From Obrimoposthia wandeli (lineage: Eukaryota), in assembly GCA_977020255.1 (NCBI GenBank), contig CDROCS010000361.1, positions 310,001-374,000 of the forward strand: a DNA stretch of 64,000 bases, read 5' to 3'. The position numbers were made by a program, and so were the translations under genes. The notes under the pieces were generated by a model that made no database searches, was not told the DNA's origin, and saw only the letters and a program-made list of their open reading frames with translations. This document shows, piece after piece, positions 26,773-31,801 of the stretch (its first letter is position 1; each line of letters begins with the position of its first letter).

Positions 26773-27207
26773 TTATTTTATTTTTTCAAAAACAAAATCA
26801 ATCTTAAAATCATCCGCAGCTACAATCGCTTTTAATTGGTCGTTTTCTAAATAGTATTCTATTTTTTTAGGAAACTCATTTTTTTCATTCTCACAAACAA
26901 AAGAAGTGTCCGTTTGTTGGGTGAATTTAAATAGTGTTGGGGTTTCGTTTACACCTTCAACTTTTAAAAATAAGGTGTCTTTTATTTTAACAATACTTAG
27001 TATTTCTTTAAAAGTAGTGTCTTTTTCTTTTAGAGTATAACCCAATCCTTTAAGGCTAGAATTCCACATTTCATAAGTAACTGATCCTTCTTTATCATTT
27101 ACACGAATCCAATCTCCAATTAAAAAAGAAGGCATTTGTATTTCCTTTTTTTTATTCTGACAAGAAATCATCAATAATAAACAACAGGTATAAAGGAGTA
27201 ATTTCAT
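26773..27207 (-). CDS. Lipoprotein, DUF6265-like
   Basis: Lipobox MISC; FLIGDW..., [20 protein letters not shown]. Confidence 0.65.
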
Positions 27208-27276
27208 AAAAATAGTAAGCTTTCTTCAAATATACCTATAAAAATTGTAAATTCGCAATCCAAGAAAAGACAGAAG

Positions 27277-28353
27277 ATGTTAGATAAATTAAGAATTGTA
27301 AAGCAACGTTATGATGAGGTTTCTGATTTAATTATTCAGCCAGAAATCATTATGGATCAGAAGCGTTATGCGCAATTGATGAAAGAATATAAAGATTTAG
27401 GAGATGTTGTTGTAAAAGGTGATGAATATAAAACTTTAAAAAACAATATCGTTGAAGCAAAAGAAATTCTTGCTGATGGTTCTGATGCAGAGATGAACGA
27501 GATGGCAAAAATGGAAATTGATGAAGCTAATACTCGAATTCCTCAATTAGAAGATGAAATAAAAGTATTATTAATACCTAAAGATCCAGAAGATACTAAG
27601 AATGCTGTTGTAGAATTACGTGCAGGAGCAGGAGGAGATGAAGCAAGTATTTTTGCTGGAGATTTGTTTAGAATGTACACAAAGTATTGTGAAGGTAGAG
27701 GTTGGAAAGTTTCTACTGTAGATTATTCTGAAGGAACAAATGGTGGATTTAAAGAAATTCAGTTCGAAGTTACTGGGAATGATGTTTATGGAATTTTAAA
27801 GTTTGAAGCTGGTGTGCATCGTGTACAAAGAGTTCCTCAAACAGAAACTCAAGGTCGTGTGCATACATCTGCAGCAACTTGTATGGTTTTTCCAGAAGCA
27901 GAAGAGTTTGATGTAGTGATTAACCCAAAAGAAGTAAGAATCGATTTTTTCTGTTCTTCTGGTCCTGGAGGTCAATCTGTAAATACAACTTACTCAGCAG
28001 TTCGTTTAACGCACATTCCTTCTGGTTTAGTTGCACAATGTCAAGATCAAAAGTCTCAACATAAAAATAAAGAGAAAGCATTTAAAGTTTTACGTTCTCG
28101 TTTATATGATATGGAATTAGCTAAGAAGAATGCAGAAGACGCTTTAAAACGTGGTTCTATGGTTTCTTCAGGTGATAGAAGTGCTAAGATTAGAACTTAT
28201 AATTATGCACAAGGAAGAGTTACAGATCATAGAATTGGTTTATCATTATACGATCTTCCTAATATTATGAATGGTGATATTCAGAAAATCATTGATGAAT
28301 TAATGTTAGCTGAAAATACTCAAAAATTAAAAGGATTAGCAGACGGAATATAG
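27277..28353 (+). CDS. prfA: Peptide chain release factor 1
   Basis: GGQ motif ([11 protein letters not shown]), PQT anticodon-mimic, RIRTYN-like KIRTYN. Confidence 0.97.
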
Positions 28354-28374
28354 TTTTTCTAATTTCTAAATATT

Positions 28375-28407
28375 AAAAGCCTCAAAACATTGTTTTGAGG
28401 CTTTTTT
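28375..28407 (+). terminator. prfA terminator
   Basis: aaaagcctcaaaac-att-gttttgaggctttttt. Confidence 0.8.
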
Positions 28408-28434
28408 ATGTTTGAGAATAAAATTTTAGAGAAT

Positions 28435-28538
28435 AAAAAAAGCGATTATAGTTTAGGGGGCCTATTAATCGCTTTCTATGTTAAAAGAATAAAATTTTCT
28501 TTAACATTAAATCTTAATTTTGGGGATAAGAAATAATT
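28435..28538 (-). ncRNA. Predicted sRNA, sibling 1
   Basis: TTG-N20-TATATTTG promoter (28575-28545), C-rich 5' hairpin, terminator aaagcgatta..taatcgcttttttt. Confidence 0.55.
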
Positions 28539-28681
28539 ATACTACAAATATATAGCAGTATTATAGTATTCACAATACCCATTTATGGGGTATTTTTTAC
28601 CTCACTGAAAACAGTGAGATGAATCACTGTTTTCAGTGAGAACATTTAAAAAACATATTTGATTAGCTAAGTTTAGGGCAT

Positions 28682-28786
28682 AAAAAAAAGCGATTATAGT
28701 TTAGGGGGCCTATTAATCGCTTTTTATGCTAAAAGTATGAATACCTCTTTAAAATTAAATCTTAATTTTGTGGATAAGAAATAATT
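28682..28786 (-). ncRNA. Predicted sRNA, sibling 2
   Basis: Promoter 28823-28793; same terminator; no ORF. Confidence 0.55.
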
Positions 28787-28929
28787 ATACTACAAATATA
28801 TAGCAGTATTATAATACTCACAATACCCATTTATGGGGTTTTTTTCATCTCACTGAAAACAGTGAGATGACTCACCGTTTTCAGTGAGAACTTTTGTATA
28901 GTATATTTGATTTGTTAAATTCAGGGCAT

Positions 28930-29035
28930 AAAAAAAGGCTATTAAAAAATGAGTATTTTTTAATAGCCTTTTTTGTTAAACAAATATTTAAGAAATCTTA
29001 AACAATCTATCTTTTGTTTGGGGGAAAGATAACTT
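28930..29035 (-). ncRNA. Predicted sRNA, sibling 3
   Basis: Promoter 29072-29042; atcttt-cccccaaac-aaaagat hairpin; terminator aaggctattaaaaaa..ttttttaatagccttttttt. Confidence 0.55.
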
Positions 29036-29178
29036 ATGGTACAAATATATAGTAGTATTATAATACTCGCAATACCCATTTATGGGGTTTTTTTCATCTC
29101 ACTGAAAACAGTGAGATGTTTCACCATTTTCAGTGAGAGCTTTTATAAAATATATTTGATTTGTTAAATTTAGGGCAT

Positions 29179-29285
29179 AAAAAAAGGCGATTAAAAAATG
29201 AGTATTTTTTATTCGCCTTTTGTGTTAAACAAATATTTAAGAAATCTTAAACAATCTATCTTTTGTTTGGGGGAAAGATTACTTA
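29179..29285 (-). ncRNA. Predicted sRNA, sibling 4
   Basis: Promoter 29322-29292; near-identical to sibling 3, with covarying terminator stem. Confidence 0.55.
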
Positions 29286-29395
29286 TAGTACAAATATATA
29301 TCAGTAATACTTTCCACACAATACCCATTTATGGGGTTTTTTTCCGTTCACCATTTTCAGTGAGAAAACTCACTGAAAACAGTTAGAAGAAATAT

Positions 29396-31801
29396 TTATT
29401 TACCTAATAAATGTAACTCGTTAAATTCTTTATCTATAAGTATAGACTGTGTTTTACCTTCGTTTATATTGTCTATTGATATTTCTACATTATCTATTTG
29501 AACGGAAGTAATAGAGAACGGTAAATTATGGAAGACAATATTAAACTTGCTATAATCTGCGTTAAAGTCTCCACGTTTGTGTTGTTGGATAATGATTTCC
29601 TCTTTTTTACCTGTTACTTTAAAAGTACGTAAACTAAATCTTCCTTTTTTATAATCATAACCATCATGAGCATCATCATATAGTTTTGAAGATTCTTTAC
29701 CCTCTTTATAATAAACATCTAAAGTGATATCATCAAATTTCTTTTCACCAACATATTGTTGTACAGGATATTTAGGAATAACAGCACCTTCTTTAATAAA
29801 GATTGGCATACTGTCTAATTCAGCATCTACCCACATTTCTTTTCCTCCTTCTACTAATTCATCAGTCCAGAAATTATACCATTTACCTTTAGGAACATAC
29901 ATACGTCTCCCTTTTGCATTAGGTTCTTGTATAGGACAAACTAAAATTTGCTCTCCATAAACAAACTCATCACTTCTGTAATGTGTTGCTGTATCTTCTT
30001 GATCGTATAATACTAAAGATTTTAAAATTGGTGTTCCATCATTTATATAATTCCAAAAAGCGGTATATAAATATGGTAATAATTGGTATCTAAGTTCAAC
30101 GAATTTTCTTACAATATCTGTAACTTCATCACCAAAAACCCAAGGTTCTTGATCTCCGTGATCTCCAGAAGAATGTACTCTACAAAAAGCGTGAAAAACT
30201 CCTAATTGTATCCAACGTGTAAATAATTCTCCTTGTGGTTGTTCTGCAAAACCACCAATATCAGATCCTGCAAAAGAAAAACCAGACATCGCCATTCTTT
30301 GAGCTTGGTTATTTGCAATTGCTAAATGTTCCCAAGTTGCAACGTTATCTCCCATCCAAGTAGATGTATAACGTTGTGCTCCAGAATAAGCAGATCTTGT
30401 AATTACAAAAGGTCTTTTTGGATATGCGTATTTCTTTAAACCATGATAGGTTGCACGTGCCATTTGAGTTCCATAAATATTGTGTGCTTTTCTATGAGAA
30501 CAAGGATTTCCATCATAATCATGACGAACATCGTCTGGGAAAGATTTGTTAGGAACGTCCATTACAGCTGGCTCATTCATATCATTCCACACTCCTTTTA
30601 CACCAATATCTTCAATTAATTCTTTAAATAAACCTGACCACCATTCTCTAACTTCTGGTTTTGTATAATCTGGGAAATAACATTCACCAGGCCAAACTTT
30701 ACCTTTCATATAAGGCCCATCTGCACGTTTACAGAAGTAATCTTTATCTAAACCTTCTTTAAAAACATCGTATTCTAAATCTATTTTAATTCCCGGATCT
30801 ATAATTACAACGGTTTTAAAACCATCATCTTCTAGTTCTTTTACCATTCTTTTAGGATCAGGAAAATATTCCTTATCCCAAGTAAAGCAACGGAAACCAT
30901 CCATGTAATCAATATCTAAATAAATAGCATCACAAGGAATTTTTAAATCTCTAAATGTATTTGTAACCTCTTTTACGTTAGCTTCTGGGTAATAAGACCA
31001 TTTACATTGGTGAAACCCTAAAGCCCATAATGGAGGTAAAGCATGAGGCTTACCTGTTAAATCTGTATAGTTTTTTACAACATCTTCCATTTGTGGGCCA
31101 TAAATGAAATAATAGTTCATTTCACCACCTTGCGCCCAAAAACTTGTTACATTTCTTCTTTCATGTGCAAAATCAAAAGAAGTTTTAAATGTATTGTCAA
31201 AAAATATACCGTAAGATTTTTTGTCTTGTATAGCTGTATAGAAAGGAATTGCTTTATAAATAGGATCGGTATCTTTACCAAAAGCATAAGAATCTGTTGC
31301 CCAGTTTTCAAAACGCTTTCCTTTTAAGTTTACATCTACAGGCTTATCTCCTAAACCATAAAAACTTTCTGACTTCTGGCAAGCTTTACTCATTTTTACG
31401 ATGTCTCCACCATATTCATAACTTTCTTCCCAGTGAAAACCAATTTCGTCTTGGTTTATAAGTTTTAAATCTACAGCATCAAATAAACTTACTTGTAAAC
31501 TAAGTTTTTCTACTTTACAAATTAATTTAGAAGTAGTAATAATGTAATGAGTTTCGTTTTCAGTTACATCTAAAAAGCTATAACCTCTACTTGCATGAAT
31601 GGTAACTCCGTAAGAAAAATCATTTTCAAATTTTCCTGTTGTGCTATATCTAAAACGAATAACACTGTCTCTTACAACTGTAACTTGTAATACAACATTA
31701 TTTTTAGTTGTAAAGGAAAGTGTATCTACATCCTTTTTATAATTTATAATTTCTGAAGGAAATAAATTCCCTTTTTGTTCTAACTCTGTATTAACAATCA
31801 T
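29396..31801 (-). CDS. GH31 alpha-glucosidase
   Basis: LDIDYMD, GVWNDMNEP nucleophile, TWMGDN acid/base, SDIGGF, RWIQLGVFHAFCRVHS. Confidence 0.92.
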   Translation of the reverse strand: MIVNTELEQKGNLFPSEIINYKKDVDTLSFTTKNNVVLQVTVVRDSVIRFRYSTTGKFENDFSYGVTIHASRGYSFLDVTENETHYIITTSKLICKVEKLSLQVSLFDAVDLKLINQDEIGFHWEESYEYGGDIVKMSKACQKSESFYGLGDKPVDVNLKGKRFENWATDSYAFGKDTDPIYKAIPFYTAIQDKKSYGIFFDNTFKTSFDFAHERRNVTSFWAQGGEMNYYFIYGPQMEDVVKNYTDLTGKPHALPPLWALGFHQCKWSYYPEANVKEVTNTFRDLKIPCDAIYLDIDYMDGFRCFTWDKEYFPDPKRMVKELEDDGFKTVVIIDPGIKIDLEYDVFKEGLDKDYFCKRADGPYMKGKVWPGECYFPDYTKPEVREWWSGLFKELIEDIGVKGVWNDMNEPAVMDVPNKSFPDDVRHDYDGNPCSHRKAHNIYGTQMARATYHGLKKYAYPKRPFVITRSAYSGAQRYTSTWMGDNVATWEHLAIANNQAQRMAMSGFSFAGSDIGGFAEQPQGELFTRWIQLGVFHAFCRVHSSGDHGDQEPWVFGDEVTDIVRKFVELRYQLLPYLYTAFWNYINDGTPILKSLVLYDQEDTATHYRSDEFVYGEQILVCPIQEPNAKGRRMYVPKGKWYNFWTDELVEGGKEMWVDAELDSMPIFIKEGAVIPKYPVQQYVGEKKFDDITLDVYYKEGKESSKLYDDAHDGYDYKKGRFSLRTFKVTGKKEEIIIQQHKRGDFNADYSKFNIVFHNLPFSITSVQIDNVEISIDNINEGKTQSILIDKEFNELHLLGK

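Follow-up and report, generated by a model that had tools for sequence, protein, structure and literature searches.

The 64,000-nucleotide stretch of DNA analysed here (the window; positions 310,001 to 374,000 of contig CDROCS010000361.1 in the GenBank assembly GCA_977020255.1, registered under Obrimoposthia wandeli) contains an array of four tandem units between the gene for release factor 1 (prfA) and that for a glycoside hydrolase of family 31 (GH31). The analysis supports the interpretation of the units as predicted non-coding RNA genes, each with its own promoter and terminator and with a conserved two-hairpin structure. Probably, they constitute a family of sibling trans-acting small RNAs (sRNAs), which would be driven by an autoregulated response regulator of the NarL/LuxR type and act on mRNAs through C-rich loops.

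Anatomy and RNA structure of the array

The array occupies positions 28399–29395 of the window, and its four units, 248–249 bp each, are arranged head to tail on the minus strand. Tandem Repeats Finder reported a repeat at 28435–29344 with a period of 249, 3.7 copies, and 85% matches, and a repeat search placed four in-register copies at a spacing of 248–249 bp. Read along the minus strand, a unit consists of two 18-bp palindromes, an A-run, an imperfect palindrome, 20 nucleotides (N20), a -7 box, approximately 105 nt of putative transcript, a terminator, and a spacer of approximately 30 bp. The 18-bp palindromes have the sequence CTCACTG-AAAA/TTTT-CAGTGAG, and the two sites are separated by 4 bp. 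The final three bases of the imperfect third palindrome, ACCCCATAAATGGGTATTG, form the -33 TTG, which is followed by N20 and the -7 box TATATTTG. The promoter pattern CCATNANTGGGNATTG-N20-TANNTTTG was found on the minus strand of all four units without a mismatch, with zero occurrences expected from shuffled sequences, and the -7 box is exact in each of them. A G+C-containing hairpin followed by a T-run terminates every unit, and a compensatory change sets the terminator stems of units 3 and 4 (U3 and U4) apart, with GGCTA/TAGCC in one and GGCGA/TCGCC in the other.

The transcribed parts are 90% identical between U1 and U2, 95% identical between U3 and U4, and 62–66% identical between the pairs. 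We infer that the array is composed of four paralogous sRNA genes of two subtypes, with U3 and U4 belonging to type I and U1 and U2 to type II. U3 is a mosaic, the promoter half of which is 94% identical to U2 and the RNA half 95% identical to U4, which indicates an exchange between array copies by recombination or gene conversion. The original prediction, which was made from the sequence of the window, had described four tandem units of about 248 bp between prfA and GH31, their TTG-N20 promoters on the minus strand, their intrinsic terminators, the co-varying terminator stems of U3 and U4, the two transcribed subfamilies, and the positions of the C-rich motifs, all of which were recovered in our analysis. 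The claim that the promoter side is conserved in all four units holds for U1–U3, whose upstream halves are 87–94% identical, but not for U4, which shares 67–72% identity with these. The upstream control region with the paired 18-bp palindromes had been overlooked.

The predicted RNAs contain two stem-loops. Stem-loop 1 (SL1) comprises an outer stem with the consensus UAAG.AAUCUU / AAGAUU.CUUA, an internal loop on the 5' side with UCCCCAA, a variable inner stem, and an apical loop. SL1 is joined to stem-loop 2 by an A/U-rich linker, UUCUUAAAUAUUUGUUUAACACAAAA. Stem-loop 2 is the terminator and has a loop that usually reads CCCCUAAAC. In type II copies, SL1 consists of a short hairpin whose apical loop holds the C-rich motif. 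The C-rich motif (CCCCAA or CCCCUAA) is always located in an unpaired loop, and both the linker and the unpaired motif are conserved. The RNA of U1 has CCCC in its hairpin loop at 28522–28525 and CCCCCUAAAC in its terminator loop at approximately 28451–28460. The terminator-loop motif is absent from U3 and U4, and the terminator stem of U3 is a 20-bp inverted repeat spanning 28931–28974. Single-sequence folding of the four RNAs from the window gave z-scores from -4.1 to -7.6.

The working structure was drawn by hand and then used for re-alignment with a covariance model. When 19 type I sequences were aligned with plain MAFFT, 12 pairs had changed on both sides, and 89.9% of the cells could pair, compared with at most 59% when the partners were slid. 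The original prediction had expected a genuine RNA family to show co-variation in homologues, and an alignment of 43 distinct sequences to the covariance model displayed compensatory changes in 24 of 29 pairs, with 90.1% of cells pairing versus at most 55% with slid partners; none of 500 shuffles reached the observed values. The 43-sequence alignment was fitted to the structure and therefore leans towards it, whereas the MAFFT alignment was not. The combination of MAFFT and RNAalifold applied to all 42 sRNAs yielded no structure beyond the terminator, since SL1 has a variable inner stem that becomes misaligned. G-U pairs outnumber A-C pairs (45 versus 23), which favours the modelled minus strand as the RNA.

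The -7 box of the sigma-A promoters of Flavobacterium psychrophilum, TAnnTTTG, spans positions -12 to -5 (PMC9723704). The same spacing from the -7 box, which was used to place the start of U1, predicts transcription starts at approximately 28540, 28788, 29037, and 29286. The inter-unit spacers also contain plus-strand boxes similar to TAnnTTTG (28654–28661, 28902–28909, and 29151–29158), which face the terminators. Plus-strand transcription from these TATATTTG-like boxes was considered and rejected: they are missing in the six-copy relative described below and therefore are probably not promoters, and the ratio of G-U to A-C pairs favours the minus strand.

The tandem units could, in principle, encode micro-proteins, given that U1 contains the open reading frame (ORF) MLKKILFF. 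However, this frame, which had been pointed out in the original prediction together with the lack of a shared ORF, is present in U1 only, and its peptide is not conserved among homologues. No reading frame is conserved in the 43 distinct homologues, 26 of which lack an ATG ORF altogether, and the longest ORF encodes nine residues. Repeated units with inverted repeats could also belong to a non-functional satellite or a repeat resembling a miniature inverted-repeat transposable element, but the locus is syntenic across the genus Polaribacter and not dispersed. Furthermore, the palindromes within the window are confined to the array, and those in the Polaribacter representative genome G048 are found at a handful of promoters with a fixed geometry. 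The interpretation of the units as micro-protein genes or a non-functional repeat is extremely improbable. The coordinates of the array and of its neighbours are listed in Table 1.

Table 1. Features of the sRNA array and flanking genes in the window (R1, covariance model of promoter and RNA; R2, covariance model of RNA only)
Feature	Position	Strand	Basis and details
Unit 1 (putative type II sRNA gene beside prfA: operator, promoter, sRNA, terminator)	28399..28646	-	In-register copy; R1 147.8 bits
U1 operator: two 18-bp palindromes, 28623-28640 and 28601-28618, 4 bp apart	28601..28640	.	Pattern match, 0-1 mismatch; same module upstream of response-regulator gene
U1 promoter: ACCCCATAAATGGGTATTG ending in -33 TTG, N20, -7 box TATATTTG (28552-28545)	28545..28591	-	Pattern match
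Predicted sRNA U1, ~105 nt	28435..28540	-	Fold z-score -4.6; R2 63 bits; no conserved ORF
Unit 2 (putative type II)	28647..28894	-	Palindromes 28871-28888 and 28849-28866; -7 box 28800-28793; fold z-score -4.1
Predicted sRNA U2	28788 to 28682	-	Loop motif CCAC at 28770-28773
Unit 3 (putative type I)	28895..29143	-	Palindromes 29120-29137 and 29098-29115; -7 box 29049-29042
Predicted sRNA U3	29037 to 28930	-	CCCCC at 29020-29024; R2 101.5 bits; fold z-score -7.6
Unit 4 (putative type I)	29144..29395	-	Palindromes 29369-29386 and 29347-29364; -7 box 29298-29291
Predicted sRNA U4	29286 to 29179	-	CCCCC at 29269-29273; R2 109.3 bits; fold z-score -6.0
Bidirectional terminator hairpin between prfA 3' end and array	28375..28405	.	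14-bp stem then T-run; inverted repeat
prfA (release factor 1), convergent with array	27277..28353	+	Pfam PCRF and RF-1, as originally predicted
GH31 glycoside hydrolase, directly upstream of array, same strand	29396..31801	-	Pfam GH31 domains, as originally predicted

Distribution within the Polaribacter group

A pattern scan of species-representative genomes singled out Polaribacter. Searches with the covariance model R1, performed with a cut-off of E <= 1e-4 and strict filters, identified matches in at least 47 of the 151 genomes of the Polaribacter group. The copy number ranges from one to six per locus across Polaribacter, and arrays of two, three, and five copies occur in several genomes. 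The -33 and -7 boxes are invariant in an alignment of 16 sequences and are retained in 61 hits of the R1 model. Among 32 homologous loci that were fetched, GH31 is located upstream in 22 and prfA downstream in 26. GH31 and prfA of G048 are 98–99% identical to those of the window, but the genome contains three sRNA copies instead of four, which shows that the copy number changes quickly. The arrays of the window and of several other species have a type I copy adjoining GH31 and the type II copies after it, and the retention of this order across species indicates an old duplication that was maintained in order.

The RNA-only model R2 returned nothing credible from a sample of 150 genomes from the whole of Flavobacteriaceae, since its three weak matches were plain gene-end terminators without the promoter module. 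A permissive search of positions 27000–31000 against Rfam 15, which had been proposed with the original prediction, did not yield any family at the gathering threshold, LhrC included. The best chance match, sau-19, scored 32.8 bits against a threshold of 80 and was dismissed, as it falls on the prfA terminator. Our literature search found no description of such an sRNA family in Polaribacter or other Flavobacteriia, and a search for terms in the transcriptome paper on F. psychrophilum (PMC9723704) revealed no tandem or C-rich sRNA family. In these searches, the putative sRNA family is restricted to the Polaribacter group. The earlier proposal of an uncharacterised flavobacterial sRNA family can thus be upheld with regard to its novelty, conservation, and co-variation, but it has to be narrowed from flavobacteria in general to the genus Polaribacter.

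The predicted RNAs might be derived mainly from the 3' untranslated region (UTR) of the GH31 mRNA by read-through and processing, and not from promoters of their own. U4 begins a few bp past the GH31 stop codon without a terminator in between, and GH31 is the upstream neighbour at 22 of the 32 loci described above. Nevertheless, every copy, including the internal ones, retains a full -33/-7 promoter with invariant boxes. Moreover, GH31 was not matched within the sequence fetched for ten of the 32 loci, most of which nevertheless have an sRNA adjoining prfA. An origin from the GH31 mRNA is therefore quite improbable, and read-through is compatible with independent sRNA genes as an extra source of U4 only.

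The assembly from which the window was taken is 1.35 Gb long and includes several flavobacterial contigs. The GH31–array–prfA locus is present on two further contigs, with six copies and one copy. Contigs C361, C665, C2851, C2942, and C2910 represent several distinct Polaribacter-like bacteria, in which the GH31–prfA locus has four, six, or one sRNA copies. This mixture suggests a host-associated community that was co-assembled with a large, probably eukaryotic, genome.

Shared operator and orphan response regulator

The palindrome CTCACTG-N4-CAGTGAG occurs at eight sites in the window, all of them within the array, whereas 0.04 sites are expected. It is part of a three-site module, in which two 18-bp palindromes, 22 bp apart from centre to centre, are followed by a third site abutting the -33 TTG. 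The same module precedes a gene for a 221-residue protein in Polaribacter genomes, the start of which reads MK.KIYVHVADDH. The window's assembly contains this gene on contig C665 behind CTCACTG-N4-CAGTGAG palindromes. The protein has Pfam domains Response_reg (2.6e-19) and GerE (1.4e-16), and the combination of a receiver with a GerE/LuxR helix-turn-helix identifies it as a response regulator of the NarL/FixJ type. The DD, D, S/T, and K positions, including the phospho-acceptor aspartate, are conserved in 21 orthologs. There is no kinase gene beside the regulator gene, which is flanked by rho and a DUF4293 gene. Orthologs of the regulator are present in 117 of the 151 Polaribacter-group genomes.

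For 20 genomes, the sequence preceding the regulator gene was compared with that preceding the sRNA genes. The palindromes match within each genome and fall into at least four classes between clades. The palindrome CTCACTGttttCAGTGAG is shared by the window and nine genomes, CTCACGGttttCCGTGAG is present in three genomes, and ATCCCTGAATTCAGGGAT in four. ATCCCTGAGCTCAGGGAT was found in a single genome, in which both promoters are changed, CTCCCTATAAATAGGGAG in two of the 20 genomes and in P. vadi, and TTCACCAtttatAGTGAA in one genome. The distal block has an average identity of 0.75 within genomes, compared with 0.52 between classes. The sites listed for G048 comprise 19 of class A (four for the control pattern) and none of class C. 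In contrast, genome G090 has 11 class-C sites, among them those at its own sRNA and regulator genes, and none for the control pattern. The start of the recognition helix of the regulator varies together with the operator: it reads LS[TVR]NT in genomes with CAC-type operators, [IL]S[HP]HT with CCCTG-type operators, and LG[IV]ST with CCCTAT-type operators, while the protein is otherwise highly conserved. This co-variation of recognition helix and operator is suggestive of a specific pairing of the two, and Polaribacter may provide an unusually clear case of an operator and its regulator changing together.

The site triplet in G048 consists of site 1, site 2 at +22, and, directly adjoining the -33 element, site 3 at +26, and it marks the three sRNA genes, the regulator gene, and about five other promoters. 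One of these belongs to a 1397-residue S8 subtilase with MAM domains that is secreted by the type IX secretion system (T9SS). A second triplet is associated with an unrelated C-rich sRNA-like unit at C1:2371287-2371510, with CCCCCAAGAAUCCCCCUUAAAA, a hairpin, and a T-run, located upstream of an ABC-F ATPase gene; this unit may be a member of the regulon or the leader of that gene. Further triplets precede the gene for a 124-residue protein and that for a 146-residue secreted protein, neither of which was assigned a function, and the latter is followed by an AhpC/TSA gene. A pair of sites in a similar style is situated upstream of the TatA gene, and a more degenerate pair at one further locus. 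The distribution of the operators suggests a small regulon around an orphan response regulator. Operator-like palindromes are also present in the window's assembly at C665:1711028, in the gap that separates a nucleotidyltransferase/TPR operon from the gene upstream of it, and the site at the syntenic position of G048 is directed towards the S8 subtilase gene.

The functional unit of the array could be its DNA, with the transcripts as by-products. The 12 operator sites of the array would then act as a bank for buffering or titrating the response regulator, or its repeated bidirectional terminators would insulate the convergent GH31 and prfA genes. The operator sites are the best-conserved part of U1–U3, six of the 19 class-A sites that the pattern scan lists in G048 belong to the array, and the terminators are close to symmetrical. 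However, both RNA helices have been maintained by compensatory changes across species, as have, by conservation, the unpaired C-rich motif and the linker, and species with a single copy keep a complete sRNA gene. A function of the array as DNA is therefore very improbable.

Proposed mechanism and related systems

Based on the array, its homologues, and the shared operators, a mechanism can be proposed for the favoured sRNA circuit. Dimers of the orphan NarL/LuxR-type regulator would bind to the three-site operator, and the presence of the same operator at the regulator gene would enable autoregulation. The phosphorylated regulator may, through the site overlapping the -33 element, switch on all sRNA copies together, and the copy number would set the dose. 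Each RNA is predicted to contain a 5' stem-loop exposing UCCCCAA in an internal or apical loop, the A/U-rich linker, and the terminator hairpin, usually with the CCCCUAAAC loop. The exposed C-rich loops may pair with mRNAs at G-rich sites of their 5' regions and alter the translation or stability of these mRNAs. The C-rich motifs, conserved and always unpaired in the model, appear to be the obvious functional surface of the sRNAs. Base-pairing with G-rich mRNA sites is our preferred mode of action, although the case for it is thin.

A candidate target was found in G048, in which the gene for a 426-residue secreted protein without a Pfam domain has UGGGGAUAA about 20 nucleotides before its start, and its 5' UTR carries the element UUGGGGAUAA at about -20. 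Orthologs of the gene from three further species keep AAUUGGGGAUAAUUA within an otherwise variable UTR. The complementarity of AAUUGGGGAUAAUUA to the conserved sRNA motif UUAUCCCCAA amounts to 10 bp in three species and 9 bp in G048, and the site is missing in two species whose sRNAs do not contain the exact UUAUCCCCAA motif. The -7 box of the 426-residue protein gene, TATATTGC, is similar to TAnnTTGY, a variant reported from F. psychrophilum.

Several results weigh against the proposed mechanism. None of the public RNA runs that were searched contains the array sequence, and therefore the transcription of the units, its start sites, 3' ends, and strand are predictions. The terminators are nearly symmetrical and could act on either strand. 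Operator class and helix class both follow the phylogeny, so their correlation does not constitute independent proof that the regulator is the binder. Complements of 9–11-nt seeds in 944 translation-initiation regions (944 ORFs from 1.2 Mb of G048) showed no excess over a reversed-sRNA control, and GGGG occurs only four times in the -30 to -1 windows of G048. Finally, two pattern searches of the window's assembly, including the surroundings of the ortholog of the 426-residue protein gene (C361:59594), did not find the candidate target site. The C-rich loops were also considered for pairing with the G-rich Shine–Dalgarno (SD) sequence of a prfB frameshift site, and this link was rejected because prfB of G048 (C1:349944-351100) is a single uninterrupted ORF. 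The G048 gene for release factor 2 thus has no programmed +1 frameshift site, unlike that of many bacteria.

The C-rich motifs of the tandem copies might instead titrate a protein that recognises CCCC(U)AA, as in the protein sponges CsrB and RsmZ. A sponge would fit the two similar, always unpaired C-rich motifs per RNA, the dosage logic of a multicopy array, the limited use of SD pairing in Bacteroidota (PMC9723704), and the lack of target enrichment in the base-pairing scan of G048. Furthermore, CCCCUAAA is present immediately before the start codon in some 5' UTRs of G048, such as those of adjacent genes at C1:1686347-1690640. On the other hand, CCCC is barely more frequent in the -30 to -1 windows of G048 than in other intergenic DNA (0.93 against 0.75 per kb), no protein emerged as a candidate binding partner, and U3 and U4 do not have the motif in the terminator loop. 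We consider it unlikely that the sRNAs function as a protein sponge. The original prediction had preferred protein sponging or non-SD targets to anti-SD pairing, and the scans of G048 lent support to neither mode. The two adjacent genes at C1:1686347-1690700 each have two CCCCUA(AA) motifs in a short leader, the same motif that the sRNAs display, and encode a 149-residue secreted protein and a 1192-residue protein with a Por_Secre_tail domain.

A more far-reaching reading comprises two separate propositions. One is that the DNA specificity of regulator and operators switched four or more times in a single genus and that all promoters of the regulon followed the change; the other is that the response regulator exerts much of its output through a dosage-variable bank of C-rich sRNAs by an undescribed route, such as titration of a protein binding the C-rich motif or pairing with rare G-rich elements of 5' UTRs. 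The two together are possible, if doubtful. The clade-specific operator classes and helix changes offer a compact natural system in which a regulator and its whole regulon may have changed DNA specificity together, and the switching, if true, would be a natural case of coordinated regulator–operator co-evolution.

Polaribacter are among the dominant degraders of algal polysaccharides in marine blooms. To our knowledge, post-transcriptional control in Flavobacteriia is almost unexplored, and circuits of sibling sRNAs and two-component systems are barely known in Bacteroidota. The analysis provides a ready-made covariance model, genus-wide loci with one to six copies, and a testable circuit made up of an orphan NarL-type regulator, a three-site operator, sibling sRNAs, and a few protein genes, including that of the T9SS-secreted subtilase.

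The closest parallel is provided by LhrC1-5 of Listeria monocytogenes, multicopy sRNAs under the control of the LisRK two-component system (PMC4132741, PMC5880928). Both systems consist of siblings of approximately 100 nt, several of them in tandem, with a promoter and a terminator for each copy and with redundant C-rich motifs in loops, the terminator loop included. They also share the dependence on a response regulator, which the common operators suggest for the Polaribacter array. However, there is no homology in sequence or structure, as the array has no Rfam match, and the two systems belong to different phyla. LhrC pairs with SD regions, which is unlikely for the Polaribacter array with its sigma-A -33/-7 promoters in a background of little SD use. 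The Polaribacter regulator is of the NarL/LuxR type and has 18-bp palindromes as its putative sites, whereas LisR is a different response regulator, of the OmpR family.

The csRNAs of Streptococcus are CiaR-dependent sRNAs (PMC4211561). They resemble the Polaribacter sRNAs in having two to six siblings per genome, some of them in tandem, in belonging to a response-regulator regulon that also holds protein-coding genes, and in differing among species in copy number and context. Unlike the csRNA system, the Polaribacter array has palindromic sites in a three-site geometry, the motif CCCC(U)AA, and a locus whose synteny extends throughout the genus. The binding site of CiaR is a direct repeat, and the csRNAs contain anti-SD and anti-AUG sequences.

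Duplicated sRNA genes that serve dosage control or sub-functionalisation are also represented by OmrA/B, Qrr1-5, and AbcR1/2 (PMC4211561), and the type I and type II copies of the window resemble an old duplication of this kind, kept in order across species. The proteobacterial systems differ in their dependence on Hfq or ProQ. We know of no Hfq, ProQ, or CsrA in Bacteroidota. The 'cuckoo' RNAs of alphaproteobacteria are further tandem or sibling sRNAs.

Sigma-A-driven independent sRNAs described in Bacteroidota include GibS and others in Bacteroides thetaiotaomicron (PMC7366714) and Rfp18 in F. psychrophilum (PMC9723704). Like the predicted Polaribacter sRNAs, they have intrinsic terminators and belong to a phylum in which initiation is not led by SD sequences, but the Polaribacter family is limited to the Polaribacter group. 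The comparison supports a new sRNA family of a known kind, that of sibling sRNAs under a two-component response regulator.

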